This document shows, one piece after another, positions 5,093 to 35,674 of a stretch of 64,000 bases of DNA. The notes under the pieces were generated by a model. That model ran no database searches and had not been told where the DNA came from. It worked only from the letters and a program-made list of their open reading frames with translations. Source of the DNA: Hyphochytrium catenoides (taxonomy: Eukaryota; Protista; Hyphochytriomycota). The stretch covers positions 6,338-70,337 of the forward strand of contig FLMG01002232.1 of assembly GCA_900088475.1 (NCBI GenBank). Direction: 5' to 3'. Position 1 is the stretch's first letter, and each line of letters begins with the position of its first letter. The translations under genes were made by a program, and so were the position numbers.

Positions 5093-5175
5093 GTAAAAGG
5101 AAGCTACAGGGAATGAGAGAGAAGGCGCAGAGATAGACTGCAGAATCGTTAATCGAAGTGAGAAAGAGCAGCGAG

Positions 5176-8100
5176 ATGGAAGAAAGAAAGAGGGATATCA
5201 GACCTCGGAGAGAGGGAAGAGACGAAGCTCCAGGAAGACGCACCACCGCTGGCAGAGAACGGGCGGAAGAAGAGAGGAAGACTGCGGAGAATGGGACAAA
5301 GCCTTCCCCTGGAAGAGGAAGAGGGAAGGAAGAGAGAAGACAGAACTTTGACGCCTCAATCACTCTTCCTCGCGCTGTCTGGGCCTCAGAGCTCACGAAG
5401 GAGAGGCCCAAAGAGATATCTTCTTTCCTCGAGTCTGCGCTGCGAGTGCATTGGGTCGACGAGCTCGTCCTCTTCCTCTCCACAGAGCAAGGAGTGAAGA
5501 AGCTGAACGCCATTCTTTCCTCTCCCTTATCGTTGACAGGATCTACGGGGAGAGAGAGGACCTTCCAGAGTATTGGCTTGAACTTCTTGAGACTCTGCAC
5601 CGGAGAGAAGTTGCTCTCCTCTTCTCATGCTTCTGCAGTGCGGACCATCTATAGAGTGATATACTATCTGTTCTTGGAGAGCTTCATTCACACTCTGAAG
5701 ACAGAGAAGAAGCATTTGAAAAGGTTGGGCCTTCTCTCTCCATCTCTTTCACTTCTCTCTTCACTTCTCTCTGCGCTATGCACCAAGGTACCAGGAGCCG
5801 CTTCTGACCCCGAGATCCGTCGCTGTGCTGAGGACTTGACAAGCTGGATTATTACTGAGAACCTGACGGGGGATGCAGAAGAGAAATCTCTCCAGACCTT
5901 GAGAGCGACTCTTCGTGTTTGTCAGCAGCTAGGGCAAAGAGAAGAGAGAGAGGAGTCGTCGGGAACACATCCTGCTTCAAGCTCTGACTACCGTCTGAGG
6001 TCGACCAATGGCTCTCTTTCTCTCCTTTCTTCCCTACGGCTCGCCCGTCCTTCTCATCCCTCAGGCCCTCGGCACGACAATGACCCAGAGGACTTCCGAA
6101 GAATTCAGATCGTGCCTACACAGGAGGAGATCCTCTCCTTGGAAGAGCCGTTCCTCCCTCAAGTGGGAGAAGTAAGGCCAAGGGAGGAAGGCCTCGAAGC
6201 AGAAGATGAGGAAGAAGAATTGGAAGAAAAGTTTCGACTTCATTTGGACCGGCACTTCCGCCTTCTTCGCGAAGATTTCTTGGCGCCCTACCGTCGAGCC
6301 ATTCAATGGCTGCTAGGGCCCGGCCCCATCTATGAAAGGCTGCAGGGGTCGAAGCAGAGCACGAGAGAGAGAAAAGAAGAGAACATCCCTCGCCTATTCG
6401 TCCTCTCTGGAGTACAAGTGCAGGGAGTCAAGGCTGACCTTAGATGCGGAATCTTACTCAGTTTCTCTTGTCGCCAACCTCCAGCGGTGCAGCAGATGAG
6501 TAAGGCGAAAGAGAGGCGTCAGTACTGGGAGAATAGTAAGATGCTTCAGCCTGGTGCCTTGGTCGCCATCGCGGTGGGAGTTCCTAGCTTCTTCGTTTCT
6601 TCCTCTCCTTCAAAAGAGAGAGCCAACGAAGAGGGAGGAGCAGACGGCAACGCTAATTCCTTTCCAAGGTTTAGAGAGGTCGGAGCAGAGCTCATCCTGT
6701 TCGCTGTAGTGGCAGAAGGAGATGTAAACTCTGCAATCCGGCGGTCCCATGACCCGAAGGAGCTAGTGGTGCATTTGAAAGTCTTTCTGCCATCCAGTCA
6801 GATCCTGACGCTGGGAAAGAGGATGGAGACTGAAGGAGGATATCCCCCGCGGCAGCAGACGCAGAACCTTCTCGTGCAAGCTTCATCTGTCTTCTTCCCT
6901 GGATACGACCCAGTGCTACGCAGCCTCCAAGCCCATGGAGAAGAGAGGGACGGCGTTCCAAAGGATATTCAACGCATTATCTGCGCGATGGCAGGAGAAG
7001 AAATCTGGACTACTCCGCCCGCTTACCTTCTTCAATCTCAGCCACCGAGGGCCTATGACATCATCCGTACTCCAGCACCTCTGTCCCATTCGATTACCTT
7101 TAACCTCGAGCACCTGGTTGCGGAGGGACGCCATTCAGCGATGGACCTAAGGAAGGTGGCAGTGCAAGACTATCCTCGTCTTAAGGAGCTCTTGCACTAT
7201 GAAGAGGCACAAGGGAACCTTCTTCTGGATGGTTCGCAGGTTGAAGCTTTTTGTGCGGCGTTGACCCATCAATGCTGCCTCATTCAAGGGCCCCCAGGGA
7301 CTGGAAAGTCTTATGTTGGCACTATTATTGTGCGGACCATTCTTCGCCAGCGTTCTCTCGTGGAGACTTCGTCCCATTCTTCTTCTGCCTCAGGGCGCCG
7401 TGCCCCACGGGTGGTTCCAATCCTCTGCGTTTGCTATACAAACCATGCGCTGGATCAATTTCTAGAAGGCCTAGTAGAGGCGGGCATTGAGAAGGAGAAG
7501 ATAATAAGAATGGGCGGTAGAAGTAAGTCCTCTCTCCTTGAGGAGAGGAACCTGACTTTCCTCATGAGAGGGGGTAAAGGAGGTGGGAGAAGTAGAGAGG
7601 AGTCACGGGCGTTGAAGGCTCAGTTTGCCCGATATCGAGAGTTAGAAGACGGGCTAAAAGACTATGCAGAAAGTCTCTCTCTCTCTCCCTCTTCTAACTT
7701 CCAGCAGTTCCAGAAGTGGATGAAAGAGTTCTACCCTGAGCAGCTGGAGAATATCACCGGCACTGAGGACGAGGACGGCTTTCAACTCGTGGGCAAAGGA
7801 GGAAAGCAATTCACCGCCTTCCAGAGGTGGCAAAGCTGGATAAGCGGGAAGAGTGAAGTACCGGTTTACCGTCCCCTGAGGAAAGAGATGGACAATGCTG
7901 AGTTAACCACTGCCTCTCCGCTCCTCTCTTCCTCTTCTCGATCCTCCTCCGCTTCTTCTCTCCTCGATCTTGACTCTGCTGCTCTTAGCAGAGAGCAGGA
8001 GCAGACGGAGGCTGCGCCAGGTGAAGATGTCGACCTAGAGGAACTGGAGGACAGCGAGACCCCTTTCTCTATTGGGGAGAGGATAGGAGATTCTCTTGAG

Positions 8101-11100
8101 ACAACAGAAGGCGAGGCAGAGAGTCTTCTGCAGCTAAACTTCTGTACCATGTGGCTTCTTTCCCCTGAGCAGCGGCTGGCAGTGGCTTCGTATTTGAATG
8201 AGCGCTTTATGCAGCACAGAGCCGAACAGTTTCAGCGGATTGTTGCGGAGTGTGAGGAGGTTGTGCAGAGGAGACGGGAGCTTGAAGATGCTGAAAAACT
8301 TCGTCTTCTTCGCTCCTCTCATATTGTGGGAGTGACCACCACTGGCTGCGCAAAGTATCGGGAGCTATTAACAAGTCTGAGGCCATCCATCGTCATCTGT
8401 GAAGAAGCTGGCGAGGTCCTCGAAGCGCAGATACTGTCATCGATCTCTCCCGGCCTCAAACAGCTGATTATGATAGGAGACCACCTACAGCTGCGCCCCA
8501 AAGTTGAAGAATACTCTCTTTCTGCCGTATCTGGACGAGGATATGGCCTGGATATATCACTCTTCGAGAGGCTAGTCTGTGAGAGGACTGCACACTATAT
8601 GAAGGAGAGCGAGGGGCAGCGGGGAAGGGATCCAAGGGACATAATGAACGAGAAGGGAATTTTGGTCACATTAAAGACTCAGAGGAGGATGAGACCCGAG
8701 ATCGCAGATTTGGTTCGTCTGACTCTGTATGAGGACCTCAAGGACTCTGCCTGTGTCAGGGACTATCCGCCCCTAAAAGGCTTCACCAGCTCTCTCTACT
8801 TTCTCGACCATCAGCACAAAGAGAAAGAAAGTGGGGGCATTTCCAAGCAGAATGACTTTGAAGCGCGGATGGTGGTCGAGCTCGTGGAGTACCTTCTGCG
8901 ACAGGGCTGCTACGGCACTGAAGACAAGACAATTGCTGTTCTTACCCCTTACTTGGGCCAACTGGTGCTTATACGAAGGTACCTGTTGGAGAGAAGGATA
9001 GCGATGTCTGTGGAAGAGAAGGATGAGGAAATGATCAAAGAGGAGGAGGAAGATGAAGAGAGAGAGAGCTCCCCGCAATCTACGCCGTCTCTCTCGTCTA
9101 CGCCGCTTATTCAGGTCCGCAGTTTGCACAGCTGTGTGCATCTCTCCACAGTTGATAATTTCCAAGGGAACGAGGCTGCAGTTATCCTTCTTTCTACCGT
9201 GAGATGCAACGCTGAGGGCCGCGTCGGGTTTCTAAAGATGAGCAATCGAGTGAACGTCATGCTCTCTAGAGCCAGAGAAGGGATGATCGTACTGGGCTCG
9301 ACAAGCACTATAAGACAGAGTAGAGGTGCCACCATGCTTCATGCCGTATTGGAGCTCTTGGAAGACAGAAACATGTTGGGTTCAGCGCTTCAGCTTCGCT
9401 GTCAGCTCCATGGGCGGGAAAATAGTGTCAGCTCACCTGAAGACTTCAGGGTCAAAGTCCCAGACGGCGGATGTCTACTTCCCTGCCGAGCACGCCTTCC
9501 ATGCGGTCACGTTTGCCCTCGTGCCTGCCATGTAGACGATGCCTCACACAATGCTGCTTCTTTGAGATGCCTGGAGCCATGCGCAAAGGTACTACCCTGC
9601 GGTCACCCCTGCACGGAGCGGTGTTGTCAGCCTTGTGTCTGTAGAAAGCTGGTAAAGAACGTTCCGTTGCCATGCGGTCACGTCTTGCAATCTGTGGCTT
9701 GCAATGAACTGCATAGGCAAGATGGCAGGCTACCTCTCTGTCATCACCCCGTTACGATCTCTTTGCCTCTCTGCGGGCACAACGTCCAGGTCCCCTGCCA
9801 TGAGCTTCAATCAGCGCGAAAGGACGGTGATGCCGAGGGCACAATGAAGATAAGCTGGCTTAGAAAGAAGTCTTATTCTTGCTCGCATCCATGCGGAGCT
9901 GTTCGTGCCGACTGCTCCCATCCTTGTTCTCTTCGTTGCGGCTTATGCCTTGTCGCCAACCTTTCTGACGCTGAAGAAGCCTTTGCCAAAGCTCTGAAGG
10001 AAGCTAGAGAGAGGGTAACTGAAGGAAGTAATATCCTTGAATGGAACGAACATGGAGGCCCCTGCCAGCAACCTTGCAACCGAGCACTGCTCTGTGGACA
10101 TCTTTGCACAGCATCTCCCTGCCACAAAGCTGGACAATGTCCTCCTTGTCCGCTACCTTGTCCAAACGCCTGTCCCCACTCAGCGTGCCAGAAGCTGTGT
10201 AAGGCGCCCTGCCCTTCTTGTGCGGAACCCTGCCCCTGGTCATGTACCCACCAGGGCCAATGTCCACTGCCTTGTGGCTCACCTTGTATCCGCTTACCCT
10301 GTGATCAGCGTTGTGAAAGAAGGTTGCAGGGATGTGGGCATCAGTGTCCCGGCCTTTGTGGGGAAGATTGTCCGGCCTCGGAATACTGCCCAAGCTGCGG
10401 CCCTAGGGCGGCGAAGGGCGATGAGGTGGTAGACCTCATTCTCCTGACAGCGCTGAAGGATCATGACCCTTCTGACTCTCCTCTAATACGTCTCCCTTGC
10501 GGGCATATCTTCACCGTGGAAACTCTCGATGGCTGTGTGGGCATAGAGTCGCTCTATGTAAGGGCAGAGAGCCCATCCGGGGGAGAACGAGAGGCATGTT
10601 GGGTTGCAGCGCTTCCCCTTTCCCATTCTACTTCTTTCGGAGCGTCCCCTCCCGCTTGCCCTCATTGTAGACAGCCTATTTATGGTGTCAGAAGGTACGG
10701 GCGTGCGATAAATTACGCTGTCCTCCAATCAGCAGAAAAAAAGTTTCAGGGGGAGACGTCTCGGGCCATTCTTCAGCTGCAAACGCAACGGAGGACGGTG
10801 CAGCGGGTCCTGGAAACTTTAAGTGACACGAAAGGGCAGAGAGCGAAGAGAAAGCGATGGGAATCTCGCTGGGACCGCTTACTAAGGATAGAAAATATGG
10901 CAAGAAAGCAAGTGCAGATGAAGACGCCTACTGAGGAAGTCTTGGAAAAGGAGATAAGCCGCCTCTCGCAGCTCTTTACGACTACGGATAGCAATGCGAC
11001 CAAGGACCTCAATCTTTCAACATACCGGCAGACATTCCAGCACAAACCAATGATAGACTCTCGCTTAGAGCTTCTCTCCATTCAGGAGCTTCTTTTCCGC

Positions 11101-11859
11101 CTTTATGCGGCGCAGGACTGGAACACCGAGGGCGGGACAGTGTGTCCAAACGTAGAGCAGGAATATAAAGGACGAGAGCACCGGAAAGGGGGATCTAGTC
11201 GAGGCCATACGGATCGAGAAAGAGAGAGTCATTTCGTGGAGACATATGAAAACGGAGTCAAGACAGAGAAGAGGTTGCTGGAGCTATGTGAAGAGTCTCG
11301 ATCCGAGTCTTCTCAGTGTAAAGCGCTGATCTTGGGCATTCACTTCCGGGCTTCCTACATCCAGGCTCTTACAAGTGTTCCACGCAAGAGCAGAGAGAGG
11401 CGAGAAGAATCGAATGAGGAGGAACGAGAAGCGGAGCTCTCAATTGAGAAGATTAGAGAGGAATTGTCTGAGACTATGGAGAGGCATTTTGAAAAGCTCA
11501 CTTCTCTGTGCAGCAGCGAAGTCTTGTCAAGCTATGGGAGAGAGCTACCACGATTACGGAGGTTGATTGATCTCAGTCGCGGTGTCCCGTTCTATAGCGA
11601 GATCAGCGCAGAAGAAAGGCTACAGATATGGCAAGCGATGGAGACGGAGGGGCTAAGTGAGCACATGTACGGAGGGTTCGGGTGGCACTGGTATCAATGC
11701 CCAAACGGCCATCCTTATTACATTGGAGAGTGTGGAGGAGCGAATGAAGCCAGAGCTTGCCCAGAGTGTGGCGCGGGGATCGGGGGAGGTAGTCATCGAG
11801 TTGCAGAGGGAAACACTTCTGCCAGGGCCTTCTTCCAGCCAGCGTTACAAGGAAGCTAG
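5176..11859 (+). CDS. ZNFX1: ZNFX1-like protein: UPF1-like SF1 helicase, NF-X1-type Cys/His repeats, RING-like segment and C-terminal RZ zinc finger; single exon, about 2227 aa from the ATG at 5176
   Basis: RHDNDPEDFRRIQIVPT and HFRLLRED (ZNFX1-family N-terminal signature); helicase motifs QGPPGTGKS, CYTNHALDQFL, EEAGE, IGDHLQLRP, QRRMRPEI, STVDNFQGNE and NVMLSRA; many LPCGH-C repeats; WYQCPNGHPYYIGECGG...CPECGAGIGG (RZ). Confidence 0.93.
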   Translation: MEERKRDIRPRREGRDEAPGRRTTAGRERAEEERKTAENGTKPSPGRGRGKEERRQNFDASITLPRAVWASELTKERPKEISSFLESALRVHWVDELVLFLSTEQGVKKLNAILSSPLSLTGSTGRERTFQSIGLNFLRLCTGEKLLSSSHASAVRTIYRVIYYLFLESFIHTLKTEKKHLKRLGLLSPSLSLLSSLLSALCTKVPGAASDPEIRRCAEDLTSWIITENLTGDAEEKSLQTLRATLRVCQQLGQREEREESSGTHPASSSDYRLRSTNGSLSLLSSLRLARPSHPSGPRHDNDPEDFRRIQIVPTQEEILSLEEPFLPQVGEVRPREEGLEAEDEEEELEEKFRLHLDRHFRLLREDFLAPYRRAIQWLLGPGPIYERLQGSKQSTRERKEENIPRLFVLSGVQVQGVKADLRCGILLSFSCRQPPAVQQMSKAKERRQYWENSKMLQPGALVAIAVGVPSFFVSSSPSKERANEEGGADGNANSFPRFREVGAELILFAVVAEGDVNSAIRRSHDPKELVVHLKVFLPSSQILTLGKRMETEGGYPPRQQTQNLLVQASSVFFPGYDPVLRSLQAHGEERDGVPKDIQRIICAMAGEEIWTTPPAYLLQSQPPRAYDIIRTPAPLSHSITFNLEHLVAEGRHSAMDLRKVAVQDYPRLKELLHYEEAQGNLLLDGSQVEAFCAALTHQCCLIQGPPGTGKSYVGTIIVRTILRQRSLVETSSHSSSASGRRAPRVVPILCVCYTNHALDQFLEGLVEAGIEKEKIIRMGGRSKSSLLEERNLTFLMRGGKGGGRSREESRALKAQFARYRELEDGLKDYAESLSLSPSSNFQQFQKWMKEFYPEQLENITGTEDEDGFQLVGKGGKQFTAFQRWQSWISGKSEVPVYRPLRKEMDNAELTTASPLLSSSSRSSSASSLLDLDSAALSREQEQTEAAPGEDVDLEELEDSETPFSIGERIGDSLETTEGEAESLLQLNFCTMWLLSPEQRLAVASYLNERFMQHRAEQFQRIVAECEEVVQRRRELEDAEKLRLLRSSHIVGVTTTGCAKYRELLTSLRPSIVICEEAGEVLEAQILSSISPGLKQLIMIGDHLQLRPKVEEYSLSAVSGRGYGLDISLFERLVCERTAHYMKESEGQRGRDPRDIMNEKGILVTLKTQRRMRPEIADLVRLTLYEDLKDSACVRDYPPLKGFTSSLYFLDHQHKEKESGGISKQNDFEARMVVELVEYLLRQGCYGTEDKTIAVLTPYLGQLVLIRRYLLERRIAMSVEEKDEEMIKEEEEDEERESSPQSTPSLSSTPLIQVRSLHSCVHLSTVDNFQGNEAAVILLSTVRCNAEGRVGFLKMSNRVNVMLSRAREGMIVLGSTSTIRQSRGATMLHAVLELLEDRNMLGSALQLRCQLHGRENSVSSPEDFRVKVPDGGCLLPCRARLPCGHVCPRACHVDDASHNAASLRCLEPCAKVLPCGHPCTERCCQPCVCRKLVKNVPLPCGHVLQSVACNELHRQDGRLPLCHHPVTISLPLCGHNVQVPCHELQSARKDGDAEGTMKISWLRKKSYSCSHPCGAVRADCSHPCSLRCGLCLVANLSDAEEAFAKALKEARERVTEGSNILEWNEHGGPCQQPCNRALLCGHLCTASPCHKAGQCPPCPLPCPNACPHSACQKLCKAPCPSCAEPCPWSCTHQGQCPLPCGSPCIRLPCDQRCERRLQGCGHQCPGLCGEDCPASEYCPSCGPRAAKGDEVVDLILLTALKDHDPSDSPLIRLPCGHIFTVETLDGCVGIESLYVRAESPSGGEREACWVAALPLSHSTSFGASPPACPHCRQPIYGVRRYGRAINYAVLQSAEKKFQGETSRAILQLQTQRRTVQRVLETLSDTKGQRAKRKRWESRWDRLLRIENMARKQVQMKTPTEEVLEKEISRLSQLFTTTDSNATKDLNLSTYRQTFQHKPMIDSRLELLSIQELLFRLYAAQDWNTEGGTVCPNVEQEYKGREHRKGGSSRGHTDRERESHFVETYENGVKTEKRLLELCEESRSESSQCKALILGIHFRASYIQALTSVPRKSRERREESNEEEREAELSIEKIREELSETMERHFEKLTSLCSSEVLSSYGRELPRLRRLIDLSRGVPFYSEISAEERLQIWQAMETEGLSEHMYGGFGWHWYQCPNGHPYYIGECGGANEARACPECGAGIGGGSHRVAEGNTSARAFFQPALQGS

Positions 11860-15296: not shown

Positions 15297-16844
15297 ATGG
15301 TGCGGAGGGCACATCGTGACGTAGAAGTTAAGGTGCTTGACCATGTACCTTGGCCCATGACGAAGGAGATGTTAGTGGATGTCCTAGGACAAAGAGTATC
15401 GAACTTCAGCGATACCGTCATAGCAAGTCTGTGGGGAGGCGTAGGGACCGTGTCCCGCATTTTTATTGAGCTCAAGAACGAAAAGGACGAGTCAAATCGA
15501 CGAGGAGAAAGGCGAGGAGTACGAGACTCTATTACGAAGAAGGAGGCCTGTCAAACATTGATAGTCAAGCATGTCGACGCACACTTTGGGAGCGACAAAA
15601 AGTCACGCACGAAAGTTCAAAGTTATAGGGTAGAAGGAACTTTCTATAGAGACTTTGCGCAACAGCTCAACGCCAGGCATATCCGCGTCCCAGAGCCAGT
15701 TCTTGTCGCCGATGATGTGCTGGGCAACGAGTTCTTCTTTATTCTTGAGGATCTTCTAGTTAGCTATCCGGTTCAGAAAGAAGATTTGACGTTTTTAGAG
15801 GCACAAGCTGTCGTCCGCTGGATGGCAAAGTTCCATGCCTTCTTTTGGGAGAGTGCGCAGTCTTCCCTTTCAACAGCGTTAGGAAAAGTCGGGAGCTACT
15901 GGGAGCTGGAAAAGCGCCAGCCAGAGTACCGTGACCTAGAGTATGAGTATCTCCAAGTGTATAAAAGAATGAGAAGGCGATATGGAAGCTCCTTTGCAGA
16001 GGAAAAAGGTACAACTCTATTGCTGAAGCTGCGCACTTCTCCTCTGGGTGAAACTCCTGTTTTTATCCTAATTCGTCTGGCTCCTGAATCTCTCGTCCTC
16101 TCTTTCGCTATTCCATCTCTTCAATGTCATCTTGTCGCTATGCTTCGTACGCAGGCATGTTCTGTTCTGACACCAGGAACGTTGAGCGTTACCAAAAGAT
16201 GGCCATCTGCTGAAGCGGTATGATGCTTACACCCTCAACCCACAGGTATGGAGCAACTAGGAAAGCGACTGAAAGCCATCGCCAAGCCTGTCGATGCTAT
16301 CTTGCGTGGTCATACTACCAAAAATTCCGAGGACGGCGGGACAAGCCCACCCGACTCGGTGCGGTATATGACAGTGGTTCATGGGGACGTCAAAGGGGCA
16401 AATATTTTGCTTCGAAGGACAGAGCAGGGAGCTGGAGAGAAGTCTTCGAGCTCGAATCAGTGGGAAGCTGCACTTTATGACTTTCAATGGTGTGGACGAG
16501 GATATGGCGTCGTGGACTTTGCCTACTTCATGTGCTCGTCAGTCAAGAGTCCTGCAGCTTGTGAACAAGAGCTTCTCACCTTATACTACGATGAGCTAGT
16601 CGAAGGTCTGGGTGAGGATCGTGTTCCTTCGTTGGAGGTCATGACGCGGCTTTATGAAATTGCCCTTATTGACTTTGTCCGCTTCCTTGTCTCCTGGGGC
16701 ATGTGGGGCGATGAGAAATGGATTCTCCGAAGGACCAATGCGATCATGTCTGTACTTGATGGAGGAAGATTACTGACAGCTGAAGAGTACGCAGAGGCAT
16801 TACATGCCTATTTGGACTCTGTTGGCTTCACAACATTTAGATAA
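15297..16844 (+). CDS. Ecdysteroid-kinase-like / APH-choline kinase superfamily small-molecule kinase; exons 15297-16008 and 16246-16844
   Basis: SLWGGVG, LIVK, SYRVEGTFY, ILEDL, AKFHA, VVHGDVKGAN (catalytic loop) and LYDFQWCG (metal-binding). A phase-1 GT-AG intron joins EKG|MEQL. Confidence 0.85.
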
Positions 16845-18128: not shown

Positions 18129-19436
18129 ATGGCATCTATTCTCCCTGAGGGCAGCTATACCACTACCATTTATGGCCTGATTAAGGACCAGCAATATGCA
18201 GAGGCTGCACGGATTCTTCAATGGGAATTGCAGAACTTCCCGAGAAGTCGTGCTGCTCTGTCTCTCCTCGGCTATTGCTTCTTCCACATGCATGACTTCA
18301 ATAATGCAGCTCTAATCTATGAACAGCTTGTGAAGATTCATCCTGAGGTTGAGGAGTACAAGATCTATTATGCCCAAGCACTGTACAAGGCTGGCATGTT
18401 CCTTGAGGCTACAAAGGCATCACACAGGGTCGATACCCAGCAGTTTGGCCAGAGAGTCCTCGTCCTACAGGTTCCGCCTAATCTTTCCAGCCAGCCTGCC
18501 TTCCGTGCTACTCTGAGTTACAAGACTACCTTTCCTTCATGCTTAGTTTCTAGCGCTTGTTCTAAGTTTGTCTTTTTAGTCATTGTACTCATTCTCCTGC
18601 CTACGCCACAGTCTGCCATCAAGTACGAACAGGACGACTTGCCAGGAGCCAAAGCGTTGCTTGATCAATGCCTTCCTGATGACCCTGATACTGTCATCAA
18701 CTACGCATGCGTTGCGTTCAAAGAGGTAAGCCAGGGGATGATGGGTTACGGACACTGTGGGTGTGCACGAGCGAAAGAGCCAGAGGCACCGGAAAGTATA
18801 TCCATTTACCAGGATCAACCAACAAGTAAAACGGACAGTGAGGATAGTCTCAGCCAGTCACGCACAGAGAGAGAGAATGAGAGTATGTGTGCGAACGAGA
18901 GAGTCTTTGTGTTCATATTTGTGTGAGAGTGCAGGGATGAGAAAGCGAGAGAGGAGATAGAATGCGCGCCTATGCGTGTCTCTTTGATTGAGGGAAAGAG
19001 AGAGCCTATTCTAAGACAAGGGAAGGAAGATTATGGAAGGAAGCAGCAGCAAGGGGAGAGGGAGGGAAGATGCGATAACGGATGTAGACTAAGAGAGCAT
19101 AACACAGTAGGGCATAACCTTTACTGATGCTGTCCGCTTCGTACTATTCAGGGGAAGTTTGATGACGCACGTCAGAAGTTTCAGGATGCAATGAACACGT
19201 TGGGACACAAAGCAGAGCTCTCTTACGCGATTGCCCTGTGCTACTATCAGCTGAAGCAGTATGGACCAGCGTTAAAGTGTATCGCTGAAATTATTGAGAG
19301 AGGGGTCAGAGAGCATCCAGAGCTGAGTGTGGGAAGCAACGCGGATGGCGTAGATGTAAGGANNNNNNNNNNNNNNNNNNNNNNNNNNNNNNNNNNNNNN
19401 NNNNNNNNNNNNNNNNNNNNNNNNNNNNNNNNNNNN

Positions 19437-29728: not shown

Positions 29729-30667
29729 GTTCTCGTGAATGTTATAGCAGACGTTTCTCGTAGCCCGTGCCGGTCTCAGAAGGCCCAGCCTCGCTGAAGA
29801 AGCGCGAGGTCTGAAAGGAGAATAGAAGAGAGATTACCCCTACGCGGAAAGAGGAAGTCGTAACCTAAAGGGAAAAGGAAGAGTAAATCTCCCTTCTGTG
29901 CAAAGGTCAGCACAAGGTCAGTTGATGAGCTCAGCAGCAGAGTCTGACAGAGTTTATTGAGTTTTTCACGAAGATTCGCATCTTCGGCGGAATTGTTGAG
30001 CTCCACGAAAATAATGATATTGAGCGGGTAACGGAACAATCAGCCAAAATGATAATCAAAATTTAATAACTAGACTATTCATCCTGAAGATGTAACGACA
30101 TTCTTCGCGATTCCTCTTCACACATTTCTTAGACACATGCTAGTTCGGAATAAATATTCTCTTTATGGGCATATTGCCCCGATAAGTTATTCATATTAGA
30201 AATAAAGATGACTAGCCATGTCGCCCATCATCATCCTGTCTTTTCTCGCGCTTCAGCCGCACGATGTCCGCCCATCCTGGCCCCGCCTTATCGCTGGGTT
30301 CCGCCATCAGTAGTCCTTGCAGAAGAGAAGACGAGAGGCCTTCTCTACAGAGTAGGAGAGCAGGGTTAACCAAGTAAACTTGGCACTTCTTAGGCTTGCC
30401 CATCGTGCAGGACGAAGGCAGCAAAGAGCCTTTAGAGAGCAGAGAAAGGGTCGAAAGGGAAGCTTGTCTCCGGTATGCCTTTAGCTCTCTGCAGTGACGA
30501 AAGGAGCACTCCAACAAGAAAGCTGACAGACTACTGAACGAATGTCATCATAAGATCCTATTTATCTTCACTCAAACTTCGTGAAGTCGAGGTGACTTCT
30601 TGAGGTGCACAGGGCCTGTCTAGTTGGTCACGAGTCATCTGCCCTTGCCCGCTCAAGATAGGGAGTG

Positions 30668-33600
30668 ATGACGGCCTCATCTGAACCAAATGAAGCGCAA
30701 GAAGCGGAGAAAGTGGCTTGCTTGCTCATTGAGGGCAAGCAAGTCCGCCATGATCAGATGCGCTATGATCTAACGTTTAGTGCTTTGAAAAGGAAGGAAG
30801 GCTCCATTGAAATACCATCTCTGACGGACTTTTCAACCTTTCATCTACCACGGCAGCAACCGTCCACGGCGACTCTGGTGGATCTTATTACCCAAGGTGA
30901 AAAGGTGGTAAAAGCCTTTGAGGAATATACACTATCTATCGCAAACCGCTGCCCCGGGGTGCATTGTCACATCTTTCCAGGTGAGTTGTCTGATGAAGAA
31001 ACTATTCTTAGTGTCTGCCAATGCTTTTGGCCTTTCTTAACCCTAGTGTTGGTTCTTTCTCTATTTTGTTCCTTTCGCCCGTAAAGGCCTAAAGAAGGCT
31101 GAAAGGGCTAAGCAGAAGATAAAGAACGACTACGATGGGGATAGCTGTCGCCTGATGGACATTGTGCGCACCTCATTGGTCTTCAACGACGTTTCGGCAT
31201 TGAAGGAAGGTGTCTCCATCCTCATCGAAGATGTGAAGAAGTCCCCTAATATGGAGATTGAGCGGGTCAAGTCAACGTTTAAGGACAGCGCCATTCCTGG
31301 CGGATACCGTGACCTGAAGATCAACATCAGGTTTCAGGGGCACATTTGCGAGATCCAGTTGCACCTCGAGAGTCTATGGGAGCTAAAGAAGGAGGATGGG
31401 CAACGGCACTTTCACTGGTGTGAGGAGCATAAGGTCCTCCCTGACTTCTCCTGTTATGAGCTCCTCGAGAACAGCGCCGTCAGCCCTGCTTGTCTCTCCA
31501 TGGTACTCAACATTGTGAAGAGAAAGATTGGAGAGGATGCTTGGATTTTCGCTCTAGTGCATGGCCGATTGGGTCAATACCAACAGGCTGAGGAGTATTG
31601 CAGACGTGCTATTGGTGATAGTAGCCAAACGCATGGCCGGCAGGATCCACTGACATTAGGTTGTATGAACTATCTGGCACTGCTACTCATCGACCAAGGA
31701 AGGATTAGAGAAGCCGACGAGACGCTTCGGAACACTTTGAAAGGCTTTGAAATGACGTTGGACTCTAATCATCCTCAAACACTGAACACAATCAATCTCC
31801 TAGCATCTTTAATCCTCACTGAGGGTCGATGGGGTGAAGCTGAAGCTCTCTATCGCCGAGCCTTGACAGGCAGGACGGAGGCACTCGGTACTAAGCATCC
31901 TCATACACTCGAGACTCTTAATGCGTTATCAACCTTGCTCTACAAGCAAGGAAAGTATGCGGATGCTGAAGTTCTCTACAGAAAAGCTTTGGTAGGGCTA
32001 GAAGCTCTTCACGGTCCCATGCATGTCAAGACATTGGAGCAGATGACAGCGCTTGCCACCGTGCTCTGCAAACAGGGGCAGATAACAGAGGCCGAGAATC
32101 TTTTCCGGAGGGCTTCTTCCGCCTATGAGAATGTGCTGGGACCGATGCATCCAGAGACACTAACTGCTATCTTCAACCTGGCCTCGCTGCAAGCCGGACA
32201 GGGCCGAAATATCGAGGCTGAAATTCTTCATCGACGAGTGCTGAACTCTAGGGAGGAGTTCTTGGGCTATCTCCATCCTGATACCATGACGAGTGTAGCT
32301 GCCTTGGGTGGTATCTTCCAAGAGGAGAGGAAGTACGAGGAGGCAGAAGAGTTCTATACCCGCTGCATTAGAGGTAAGGACCTTCCGTTCGCGTTAACCG
32401 CGGTTGTGGAACAGCTTTATTCCCGTCTGATTACTGTCTCTTCCTCTCAAGCTCGCTTTAAGACTTCAGACCTGCCGAAGAACGCACACACATCATCTTT
32501 CCTCTTCCCTTTTCCTCCCAAGTACTTTAGTTTCCACAAAATTCCCTCCGTCCTGCCACCTCTTTCTTTCGATCTAACTTCGCCCATATATCAATCCGCG
32601 CAGATCGGGACCAGGTTCTGGGACCTAAGCATCAGCAAACTCTCTCTTGCATCTTTAGTCTCGCGACAATGTATGATGCCCAGGGCAAGTGGTTGGAGGC
32701 TGAGCCTCTATATCGAAGAGCCTTGGCGGGCTTCGAGGAAGTGCTTGGGCCCACTCACCCTGAAACGCTGGCAACCGGGAGCAATCTCGCACTCCTTCTA
32801 AGGAAGCAGGAAAAGATTGATGAAGCGGATCCTCTCTATCGCAAGGTACTGGCAGGTTACGAGCAGGTGTTGGATGAGAACCACCCTCAGACCCTCTCTA
32901 TAATGAGTGGACTTGCGGGCGTCTTGCACATCAAAGGCAGGCTGCAGGAGGCTGAGCCGCTGTATCGTAGGGCACTGCAGGGTTACCAAGAGATATGGGG
33001 AGCACGGAATACCTCTACTCTATTCATTCTCTACAACCTTGCCACCTTATTGAAGCAGCTTGGGAACCTCACTGAGGCTGAGGGGCTCTGCCGAAAGGCC
33101 CTGACAGGATACGAAGAGGTGTTAGGGCAGAAGCACGGGAACACTTTGGACAGCATCTACACTTTGGCTTGCATCCTAGCTGATCAGGGCAAAGTTGCAG
33201 AGGCAGAGTCGTACTATAAGACAGCCCTAGAAAGCTTCGAAGCTGCAATTGGCCCCAAGCATCCCGATACCCTCCGATGCGTGAACGGTCTAGCGATAGT
33301 CCTGGAAGTTCAGCAGAAGATGGAAGAGGCAGAGCAATACTATCGGAGAGCGATGATAGGTTACGATGAGGTACATGGACCCAAACATCCAGACACCATT
33401 AAGAGCGTCAACAACTTGGCCTGTCTCCTCGCCAGTCTCGGCAAACTTCTAGAGGCTGAGCCCCTTTTCCGGAAGGTTATCTCTGAATCTGGAGAGGTTA
33501 CCAAGAACATTGACACTCTGAGAAGCTTATTCAGTCTGGCAGAGCTGCTCTCAGAACAGGGCAAACTTGCGGAAGGAGAGAGCCTTCTGAGAAATGCCCT

Positions 33601-34024
33601 GCAAGGCTTTGAGGAAGCGGTCGGCCCTAAACACCTGGAGACTCTGAGGGCGATGATGTCTCTTGGAAGTCTACTGGAGCGTCAGGGAAAGTTCCATGAA
33701 GCAGAGCCCATTTTTCGCCGTTGTCTAGCGACATACAAGGAAATATATGGGAACAACCACGTGGACACCTTAACTTGCATGCTGCAAATCGCCTCTCTTC
33801 TGTCGGAAGAGGGAAAGTATGCAGAGGCGGACAAACTCTGTCTCAAAACCATCGAGGCGATTGACGACATGACGAGCAGAATGGATGTGGATGTCAAAAT
33901 CCTGACGCTAAAGAAGAGGTTTAAGTATGTCAAGCTCCGTAATAGGTTCAGAAGGCTAGTGCAGACGCTATCCTTCGGTAGCTGCTTCACTGCAGATAAC
34001 AGCAGAGTAGACGTTCTCCGCTGA
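30668..34024 (+). CDS. RelA/SpoT-like nucleotidyltransferase domain fused to about 16 42-residue TPR repeats (KLC/nephrocystin-3 type); exons 30668-30980, 31087-32373 and 32604-34024, about 1006 aa
   Basis: Spliced N-domain: PG|LKKAERAKQKIKNDYDGDSCRLMDIVRTSLVF...RVKSTF...GGYRDLKINIRF...ICEIQLH. It is followed by repeats of (L/H)GxxHPxTL...LA..L..QG+..EAE..YRRAL. Both introns are GT-AG and frame-preserving. Confidence 0.85.
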
Positions 34025-35674
34025 GGATGCTAAAGCGTCCATCAGAAGCTCTCTTCGTCGGCTGCAGCAGGTGTCCTCACCTGGCAACAATGTGCGATTG
34101 TTCATATCATATTGGAAACCTACTTTTCTTGAAGCTAGGCTATTAATATTTATCCTGTTCCTCAAACGGTCTCGCTGCTCTTCTCGCGCTATTATTTCTA
34201 CTTGGTTTCCTACCCGCTTCTGGTAGAGCGAGTCCTACTGCCGCGGGCTCACCAACAAGCTTCGGCCTCCTCCTCATCGAATAGATAGCTGGTACATTCC
34301 CTCGCTCTACTTGCATTAACCGAGCTGCAGCACTGCGACACCCTCCTTGAGTTTCACTGACGCCGTGTACGTTGACCTATTAGAACCATCATCAGACAAG
34401 GGTCAAACCTCAATCTCCGTCATCTCCTGGTGCCGTCTGCCAGGACAATGGGGCAGTGCTGCTGCAGCCCCTGAAGGCTCCGCTGATCAGCTCCGATCCC
34501 ATGCTGATCCACCCTATAACGGCCAACTTCAACTCGGCGCCTGACGCTTCCTAACAAGCAACCCCATGGCTGCTCCTCTCCCATCCTCCCTCCCTCCCTT
34601 CTAACCCTATTAAGCAGCAGCAACACCAACAGCACCGGCTCTCTCACTGGAACAGTGGTACTGTATGGGCAGTCCCATGAAGCATATAATAGATTTCATT
34701 TGTGAAAGCTTTATCAGAACCATGAGGTAAATATAGGAAAGATTGGCCTTGTACGAAACCTTGTTTATATTTCCATTTATGTAGAGAAATGTTTCCTGGG
34801 TAGGTTACGTTTCCGCTGACCTCAGGCATCTGAGGCATCCCCATCACCTCTATTATAGATATATTTAGGAGGAGGTACCCCCACCCCCATGGGCCCGGCG
34901 TTTAGTAGGTTTGTTACATGGACATCAGGGTTATGCAAGCTAACAATGTCGACCTGGAAGTAAAGTGCATGGCATTCGAGACAGAGTCAAAATGAGAGAT
35001 GAAAGTGGAAGAGCCAGAGTGGCTAGTGAGTGGTGGGGTTACGAGTAGCTTGGGGGATATTTCATAGGACACAGAGTCTACAAGAGATAGACGGGGAAGA
35101 AGAGACCAAAACCCTGAGAGGTGATGCAAATGAAGGAAGAAGAGAGTTTCTTTGTGAAGCGCGTGCAGGGTTACCTCGAGCAACAGAGCGACAAAGAAGA
35201 GTGGTGACATTGGAGCACAGGCTCCATTGGCCAATAACTGAGCTTTCGGAGGCCAAAGTTCCTCTAGTGATCTTGCGAGACAAACACGGCTGGAAGTACG
35301 GCTGTTGACCAGCCTATTAGCAAGTACGAGCGTGCAAGAGAGCAAGAGAGCGAGAGAGCGAGAGAGCTGACCACGGCGTTCAGGTCCCTGCGCCGATATA
35401 GACCAGAGTTCTATAATAGGTCGAAAGTCTTATGATGGCCTCGGGCACATCTTCACTTGGCGGAGAATCTGTCTGAGGGGAAGAGGAGAGCTTTTTTGGA
35501 GGAATAGTAATCCTTGCTGAGGGGTAGCATACAGTCTTTCCTGGGGAAGAGGGAAGAGCTGATGCCTATGAGAAAGGGGAATGCTTTCAACAATACAAGA
35601 GAGAGACTGGAGCTTGAGCTGAAGACTGTGATGCCTGTGAAGGCGTTGGGTCATCAATGCCATCAGTGAGGTCG

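Follow-up and report, generated by a model that had tools for sequence, protein, structure and literature searches.

Alarmone synthetases, the enzymes of the RelA/SpoT homologue (RSH) type, are viewed as bacterial and plastid enzymes, and, to our knowledge, the only described synthetases of (p)ppApp are toxins or exported enzymes of bacteria. Here we describe a gene of Hyphochytrium catenoides on the forward strand of contig FLMG01002232.1 (assembly GCA_900088475.1), at positions 30668-34024 of the 64,000-nt stretch that was analysed (hereafter, the window). Its predicted product almost certainly joins an N-terminal RSH-type domain to a superhelix of tetratricopeptide repeats (TPRs), and several described proteins share parts of this design.

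Tas1/Apk1 of Pseudomonas aeruginosa (6ox6) has the same predicted fold and is the best sequence match among solved structures, with which the H. catenoides protein shares the K..ERA..KI..DY.GD...D..R block and the GY, ExQ and GH..Y motifs. In Tas1, however, the domain is the C-terminal toxin part of a bacterial effector that is secreted by a type VI secretion system and has an immunity protein, whereas here it is N-terminal in a presumed eukaryotic intracellular protein and is followed by 17 TPRs. In addition, the H. catenoides protein has no delivery module (PAAR, LXG and the like) by Pfam, no candidate immunity gene was seen among the neighbours scanned, and the sequence GGYRD stands where Tas1 has GYSG. 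A survey of Tas1/Apk1 homologues published in 2025 was restricted to bacteria, and the word 'eukaryot' appears nowhere in its text (PMC12691689).

A second point of comparison is provided by the fungal NOD-like receptors (NLRs; NOD, nucleotide-binding oligomerization domain), in which RelA_SpoT is one of the N-terminal effector domains (Dyrka et al. 2014, PMC4986451; PMC12258605). They are alike in having a eukaryotic, cytosolic, N-terminal RSH-type domain, C-terminal repeats that form a superstructure, and a proposed effector-plus-sensor logic. The fungal proteins were collected with PF04607 and have NACHT (in most cases) or NB-ARC at their centre, whereas no NOD or Walker A motif is found here and PF04607 does not match. 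Divergent synthetase-only RSHs that could not be classified ('divRel') have also been reported from Aspergillus, Gibberella, Dictyostelium and diatoms, in a study that noted these fungi to be without an RSH hydrolase and that does not mention TPRs (Atkinson et al. 2011, PMC3153485). Like the protein described here, those in the 2011 set are eukaryotic, not of the plastid type, and synthetase-only with no hydrolase, and diatom proteins are among the relatives of the H. catenoides gene.

The bacterial CapRel (7ztb, 9erv) resembles the predicted protein in its logic, as a single chain with an N-terminal toxic small alarmone synthetase (toxSAS) of the RSH type, a C-terminal part for control and recognition of a foreign protein, and no NTPase switch. 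It is a structural match to the RSH domain only (Z 7.3-7.7), with no sequence-profile match, and it differs in being tRNA-modifying and bacterial or prophage-encoded, with a small antitoxin-type (pseudo-zinc-finger) domain at its C-terminus and not a TPR array. Kinesin light chain and nephrocystin-3 share only the 42-aa TPR_10/TPR_12 repeats and are without a nucleotidyltransferase (NTase) domain.

Our literature search found no paper joining an alarmone synthetase with TPRs in eukaryotes; TPR additions to the otherwise ordinary plastid RSH4 of green algae come to us from Ito (2017) as cited by Avilan et al. (2019, PMC6881373). The novelty implied by the original prediction for this locus, made from the sequence alone, was overstated, since divergent eukaryotic small alarmone synthetases (PMC3153485) and RelA_SpoT effectors of NLRs (PMC4986451) have been published and several relatives of the gene are already annotated automatically. 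What is new is the variant, whereas both RSH domains of the toxin type and effector-repeat sensors were known before.

An RSH synthetase is expected to be recognisable from its sequence family and from its fold. Searched on its own, the H. catenoides sequence gave no Pfam match to RelA_SpoT (PF04607) at E <= 1 with any exon piece, and no RelA_SpoT match in NCBIfam or PADLOC; phmmer against the PDB with the single N-domain sequence returned Tas1 alone (E 0.01). Because the single sequence misses PF04607, the domain is best placed in a divergent branch that is recognised only through a family profile or structure. To collect that family, residues 1-144 of exon 2 were compared exhaustively by phmmer with 1.84 billion representatives. 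We observed 1498 matching proteins at E <= 0.001, of which 117 reached 1e-10 or lower and the top match had 41% identity, so that the enzyme-domain family appears to comprise about 1,500 representatives at this threshold. A profile built from a 91-sequence domain alignment (A2) has the consensus G.LK...RA..K....Y.GD..R..D..R.S.V ... RVK..F.......GGYRD...N....GHICE.QLHL......K...GH..Y...R. Against the PDB, this profile matched Tas1 (6ox6) at E 1.6e-17, RelP/YwaC (6fgk) at 4.8e-6, the exported synthetase SaEAS (8vx3) at 6.5e-5 and RelQ (2be3) at 1.4e-3. Five of 44 relatives pass the Pfam RelA_SpoT model (PF04607) on their own.

Structural comparison gave the same picture. An AlphaFold model of exon-2 residues 1-154, made with the family alignment, reached a predicted local distance difference test (pLDDT) score of 82. 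All 50 PDB matches listed by Foldseek for it are RSH synthetases (RelP, Tas1, RelQ, SAS1, SaEAS, FaRel2, SpoT, Rel, RelA and CapRel), and with VIA-align RSH synthetases make up 28 of the top 29 matches (Z 9.1-5.7, the best being SAS1 5ded at Z 9.1), after which unrelated folds follow at Z 5.4 or lower. The block K..ERA..KI..DY.GD....D..R is common to this protein and Tas1, and in the motif-block alignment of the two, KSRERAMQKINNDYKGDPTKIKDLARNTIIV pairs with KKAERAKQKIKNDYDGDSCRLMDIVRTSLVF. These profile and model matches confirm the RSH/Pol-beta-type NTase fold that had been proposed for the N-domain from a handful of motifs, and Tas1 is its closest solved relative. The suggestion that automated annotation would overlook the enzyme was borne out as well, both by the null searches with the single sequence and by relatives labelled as TPR or kinesin light chain-like proteins.

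A working synthetase is further expected to retain its catalytic residues. The motifs LKKAERAKQKI, DIVR, GGYRD and CEIQLH do occur in the order first described, and in the 91-sequence alignment they coincide with the columns of highest conservation. The protein has the basic residues of Syn1 that bind the ATP phosphates (K107, R111 and K115), which vary little or not at all among the 90 relatives, and D129 aligns with the metal-binding Asp of both RelP and Tas1. GGYRD aligns with GYRS of RelP in the profile alignment, which places Y178 at the acceptor-stacking Tyr; Y178 and D180 are found in 100% of the relatives, G177 and R179 in 98%, and N184 in 90%. Altogether, 13 of 13 invariant or near-invariant residues are retained (K107, K115, Y120, D129, R132, K166, G177, Y178, R179, D180, N184, E193 and Q195). 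The catalytic domain therefore looks complete, with all of the residues that RSH enzymes would use for Mg-ATP binding and pyrophosphoryl transfer.

The original prediction was that three open reading frames (ORFs) splice to a protein of about 1006 aa, and the model obtained here agrees with it, with GT..AG introns, junctions at 30980/31087 and 32373/32604, and a product of 1006 aa (104 + 1 + 428 + 1 + 472). The start ATG lies at 30668, with in-frame stops upstream. At the first junction exon 1 gives one base and exon 2 completes GGC (Gly), followed by LKKAERAKQKI; excision of intron 1 thus yields ...FP-G-LKKAERA, which fits the family consensus G.LK...RA..K. Split codons were entered as X in the homology, register and motif analyses. 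In a phmmer search with exon 1, X and exon-2 residues 1-150, many alignments begin at query residues 25-60 and extend into exon 2. Viewed at residue level, P0046, P0099 and P0086 span the junction with a gap of at most one residue beside it (for example, cHIFPxLKK pairs with C-VLGGLKK of P0099). Because alignments of relatives run across this junction, exon 1 is most simply read as part of the conserved enzyme domain. At the second junction exon 2 again gives one base and exon 3 completes the codon. Excision of intron 2 exactly restores the 42-aa TPR register, with the unit at 508-549 straddling the junction, while reading through it adds 142 non-TPR residues before a stop at 32801.

The joining of enzyme and repeats can be considered apart from these introns. 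A single ORF, 31155-32801, holds DIVR, GGYRD, CEIQLH and six and a half TPR units, and the possibility of separate enzyme and TPR genes was rejected on this ground. Since exon 2 alone carries the catalytic core and 6.5 TPRs, the fusion does not depend on splicing.

Variation between haplotypes provides a further view of the gene model. The haplotypes are contigs from two DNA runs of the same organism, and variants were classed against the model; exon DNA was concatenated solely for this codon-wise classing. Intron 1 is the most polymorphic stretch, with nine single-nucleotide polymorphisms (SNPs) and indels of 2 nt and 1 nt in only 106 nt, and the flanks (444 nt) carry 11 SNPs and two indels. 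The 3021 coding nucleotides carry 11 SNPs, eight synonymous and three nonsynonymous, with zero indels, and all three variants in exon 1 are synonymous. This is what would be seen if the coding frame is under constraint and intron 1 is real, and the gene, which has introns, is apparently intact and not broken. Across window positions 30400-34200 the two haplotypes occur at about equal depth and differ mostly in the 5' flank and intron 1. The DNA source is either heterozygous or a mix of two close strains.

C-terminal to the enzyme domain, from approximately aa 250 to 970, Pfam finds TPR families only. TPR_12 matches at E 1.7e-45 and 1.9e-98, TPR_10 at E 3.2e-45 and 6.4e-90, and TPR_NPHP3 scores 159 bits on exon 3. 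About 16 repeats of 42 residues had been proposed; the 42-aa register holds exactly for 13 units (aa 256-801), but these are followed by one unit of 39 aa and three more, so that the count is 17. When all of exon 2 is modelled with AlphaFold (pLDDT 89.5, pTM 0.78), a confident beta-sheet core at residues 1-113 is followed by a linker at 110-155 with pLDDT 55-76 and then by very confident regular helix pairs. The linker that leads from the enzyme domain to the TPR array is about 20-45 residues long.

Domains that would assign the protein to a better known class were also sought. Pfam found no HD, TGS, ACT/RRM, NACHT or NB-ARC domain at E <= 1, P-loop domains included, and no Walker A motif was found in the 1006-aa protein; that HD, TGS, ACT, NACHT and NB-ARC are missing had been noted before. 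A classical long or plastid RSH was rejected for want of HD, TGS and ACT/RRM domains by Pfam, an NLR because NACHT, NB-ARC, any P-loop and Walker A are missing, and a kinesin light chain because an NTase domain is present and the resemblance is confined to the type of repeat. The earlier impression that there is no obvious targeting presequence also holds as far as a Kyte-Doolittle scan reaches: it showed no transmembrane or strongly hydrophobic N-terminal segment, no dedicated signal, targeting or transit-peptide predictor having been run, and the N-terminus is acidic and polar without a hydrophobic stretch. These results suggest a soluble protein without an NTPase switch, a hydrolase or a ribosome-binding domain.

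The relatives show where else the domain is used. Its placement varies, at the C-terminus of long proteins (as in toxins), twice per protein, or at the N-terminus of repeat proteins. Among the Pfam partners in 44 relatives, TPR_12 occurs in eight and LRR in two, with one each of Arm, ubiquitin, helicase/ResIII, AAA and ParB-like domains. At least 15 of 166 relatives carry two or more TPR units, in all cases C-terminal to the RSH-like domain; this count is a lower bound, since it comes from an iterated hidden Markov model of this protein's own repeats, which is narrow and undercounts. Three of the TPR-bearing relatives were placed in their surroundings: P0022 has neighbours that encode an acyl-CoA oxidase and an RGS/7TM protein, P0046 adjoins Arm-repeat genes, and the contig of P0134 is 1.18 Mb long, its ORF calls being fragmented. 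All three contexts look eukaryote-like. In a domain tree of 167 sequences, 71 of 163 forks remain open and many of the 'non-TPR' rows are fragments.

Further relatives were found by other routes. A word-indexed homologue search with exon 2 gave 16 distant matches, two of which are diatom proteins (P0013 and P0014), and an exact look-up of the window's ORF products found them absent from the protein collection. Atlas clusters with the domain come from Bacillariophyta, Foraminifera and bacteria, and in one structurally near Atlas cluster (631 aa) TPR_10 is present in 99% of members. AlphaFold-DB neighbours are mostly transcriptome-derived; several are automatically named 'RelA/SpoT domain-containing protein' in UniProt, another, of 592 aa and with the domain at 132-243, bears the name 'Kinesin light chain-like protein', and other relatives are named 'tetratricopeptide (TPR) repeat protein'. 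Because the domain is invisible to single-sequence Pfam searches, members pass under the labels 'TPR repeat' or 'kinesin light chain-like' and surveys miss them. These observations suggest a recurrent protist family, catalogued but undescribed, with a fixed enzyme-then-TPR order. The family is patchy, no relative exceeds 44% identity, and partner domains are variable.

Two RSH-like copies per protein were seen in 18 of the 166 relatives (P0017, P0018, P0021, P0024, P0025, P0029, P0032, P0041 and others), often with one copy mid-protein and the other at the extreme C-terminus. They recall the two-copy type III secretion system effectors described among RelA/SpoT-like toxin domains (Zhang et al. 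2012, PMC3482391). In the 64-kb window itself, tblastn detected no further copy of the domain. Among the ESM Atlas neighbours of the exon-2 model, bacterial clusters fuse Pkinase or a ThsB-type TIR to TPR_10/12 with no NTPase domain, and enzyme plus TPR without a NOD appears to be a general design.

We favour a reading in which the protein is a pyrophosphokinase, gated or targeted by its TPRs, that acts in a conflict or stress setting; taken as a whole, this functional reading is given a probability of roughly one half. By RSH enzymology, ATP would be the donor from which the N-domain takes the beta-gamma pyrophosphate, and an acceptor nucleotide would receive it on its 3'-OH. From the proximity to Tas1, the acceptor would most likely be an adenine nucleotide, giving (p)ppApp and a drain on ATP, with guanine nucleotides or tRNA also possible. 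The TPR array would be the regulatory or recognition part, either keeping the enzyme inactive as long as no protein ligand is bound or recruiting it to the place where it acts. Cells would respond with growth arrest or death, or an alarm would be signalled. The architecture may thus be that of a one-chain sensor-plus-effector, with a logic that would resemble CapRel, in which a phage protein releases the RSH toxin, and the effector-repeat layout of fungal NLRs, minus the NOD. A eukaryotic Tas1-like family with a recognition array would provide an experimental handle on whether eukaryotes make such nucleotides and use them outside plastids, and on whether a bacterial toxin domain was recruited to eukaryotic cell-autonomous defence without an NLR-type switch.

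Several observations weigh against this reading. The Syn3 motif GGYRD..N is unlike both that of Tas1 (GYSG) and that of ppGpp synthetases (GYRS.H; GYRS in RelP), and the products of Tas1/Apk1 homologues range from (p)ppApp to (p)ppGpp, some homologues making both (PMC12691689); because of this difference and this variety, the acceptor is not readable from the sequence. The last conserved helix departs from the family, with Q210 against H, Y or F in 99% of relatives, F213 against Y in 96%, and E217 against R in 71%, and these changes could weaken or alter acceptor binding. Autoinhibition of the enzyme by the TPRs is pure inference, the linker being modelled at low confidence. Expression of the gene is presumed, and the predicted junctions and 5' end rest on sequence logic, homology and polymorphism. 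The TPR units have a mean pairwise identity of 37% and Tandem Repeats Finder detected no DNA-level tandem repeat in the array, so the array appears old and diverged and not recently amplified. Variation between the haplotypes looks purifying rather than diversifying, unlike that of the fast-evolving sensors of fungal NLRs. Among the neighbours scanned, no immunity, hydrolase or other conflict gene was identified, and PADLOC gave no match.

The evidence for an immune-like role is accordingly mixed. A toxin as nearest solved relative and relatives with conflict-type partners (LRR, Arm, ubiquitin, helicase and AAA) or with the domain placed C-terminally as in toxins would speak for it, and it is weakened by repeats that are diverged and stable and by variation that is purifying. 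In its strongest form, the gene would belong to a NOD-less multigene family of single-chain immune or conflict sensors in microbial eukaryotes, in which the TPRs sense a foreign or danger ligand and free a Tas1-like enzyme that makes (p)ppApp from ATP. We regard this form as doubtful. If true, no earlier eukaryotic suicide or alarm pathway would have been based on (p)ppApp and on draining ATP, and a bacterial toxin domain would have been re-used as a eukaryotic immune effector.

Some of the same observations would suit a protein of housekeeping or stress signalling, which makes a cytosolic alarmone-like nucleotide at a low rate and uses its TPRs as a scaffold that places it in a complex, with no ligand-triggered suicide or defence. 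Diverged, stable repeats in a gene under purifying selection, a protein with no NOD by Pfam and neighbours with no conflict genes among those scanned are all compatible with such a role, and the TPR-extended RSH4 of green-algal plastids, as reported at second hand, offers a parallel. However, the nearest solved relative is a bactericidal toxin and not a stringent-response enzyme, and a patchy family with variable partners and no member above 44% identity is typical of conflict genes. We therefore consider this role possible but less likely. It is unlikely that the domain acts instead on a macromolecule, pyrophosphorylating the 3' CCA of tRNA (as CapRel, FaRel2 and PhRel2 do) or another non-nucleotide target and so blocking translation. 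The structural matches do include CapRel (7ztb, 9erv) and FaRel2 (8pu1/3/4), with Z 5.7-7.7, and the family-specific Syn3 and Syn5 residues are unlike those of known nucleotide-specific enzymes; but the A2 profile reaches Tas1, RelP, SaEAS and RelQ and no tRNA-modifying toxSAS at E <= 1, and the common Tas1-type motif would point to nucleotide acceptors.

The remaining alternatives concern whether the locus makes an active fusion protein at all. The unusual Q210, F213 and E217 could mark an inactive relic, that is, a pseudoenzyme or an unexpressed gene whose RSH-like domain is at most a binding module. This is very unlikely given that all invariant family residues are retained and that the 3021-nt frame is open with canonical introns, its variants mostly synonymous and indels confined to noncoding sequence. 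It is also conceivable that the locus is mis-modelled, with enzyme and repeats encoded by different genes or transcripts, since the introns are predictions; but the core and TPR units 1-6.5 share one ORF, so that the fusion needs no splice, and the same domain order recurs in at least 15 relatives. A mis-modelled locus is thus extremely unlikely. Compared with all of these, the TPR-gated or TPR-targeted pyrophosphokinase acting in conflict or stress is the reading that we retain. The features on which it is based are listed in Table 1.

Table 1 Predicted features of the gene, in window positions.
Feature	Positions	Strand	Content or basis
Exon 1	30668-30980	+	aa 1-104 and first base of codon 105; N-terminal helical part of the RSH-like domain from ~aa 25
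Intron 1	30981-31086	+	106 nt, GTGAGT..AAAG; in-frame stops inside
Exon 2	31087-32373	+	aa 105-534; RSH-like catalytic core, linker, TPR units 1 to 6.5; frame uninterrupted
Intron 2	32374-32603	+	230 nt, GTAAGG..GCAG
Exon 3	32604-34024	+	aa 534-1006 and stop; TPR units 7-17, then basic C-terminal tail of 37 aa
RSH synthetase-like domain, Tas1/Apk1 type (predicted)	30740-31478	+	aa ~25-235, split by intron 1; profile and structure matches
DIVR: D129 (Syn2 metal-binding Asp position), R132	31158-31169	+	both 100% in 90 relatives
GGYRD..N: G177, Y178, R179, D180, N184 (Syn3 acceptor-base-stacking Tyr region)	31302-31322	+	conservation and RelP alignment
E193-I-Q195 (Syn4 ExQ catalytic motif)	31350-31358	+	E and Q 100%; aligned with EIQ of RelP and Tas1
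17 TPR_10/TPR_12-type repeats	31539-33910	+	aa 256-969, split by intron 2; Pfam and register

The wider window has approximately 50% G+C and short introns. At 5158-11859 (+) it holds a 2233-aa ORF of the NFX1/ZNFX1 helicase type, whose matches carry AAA_11/AAA_12 helicase and zinc-finger Pfam sets and whose best named relative, from Allomyces arbusculus, has 36% identity. Two smaller ORFs lie at 16248-16844 (+) and 18129-18926 (+); one has a match to ecdysteroid kinase-like (EcKL) proteins (E 3e-7) and the other has APC3/TPR_19-type repeats, which are unrelated to the TPR_10/12 array. Most other ORFs of at least 150 aa in the window have no Pfam match.

Sequences matching the gene also occur in metagenomes. 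Contigs of 151-192 nt from soil (X4) and leaf (X6) samples match window positions 30757-31203 at 95-100% identity, a stretch that runs from exon 1 through intron 1 into the first part of exon 2. The source organism or a very close relative thus probably occurs in soil and on leaves.

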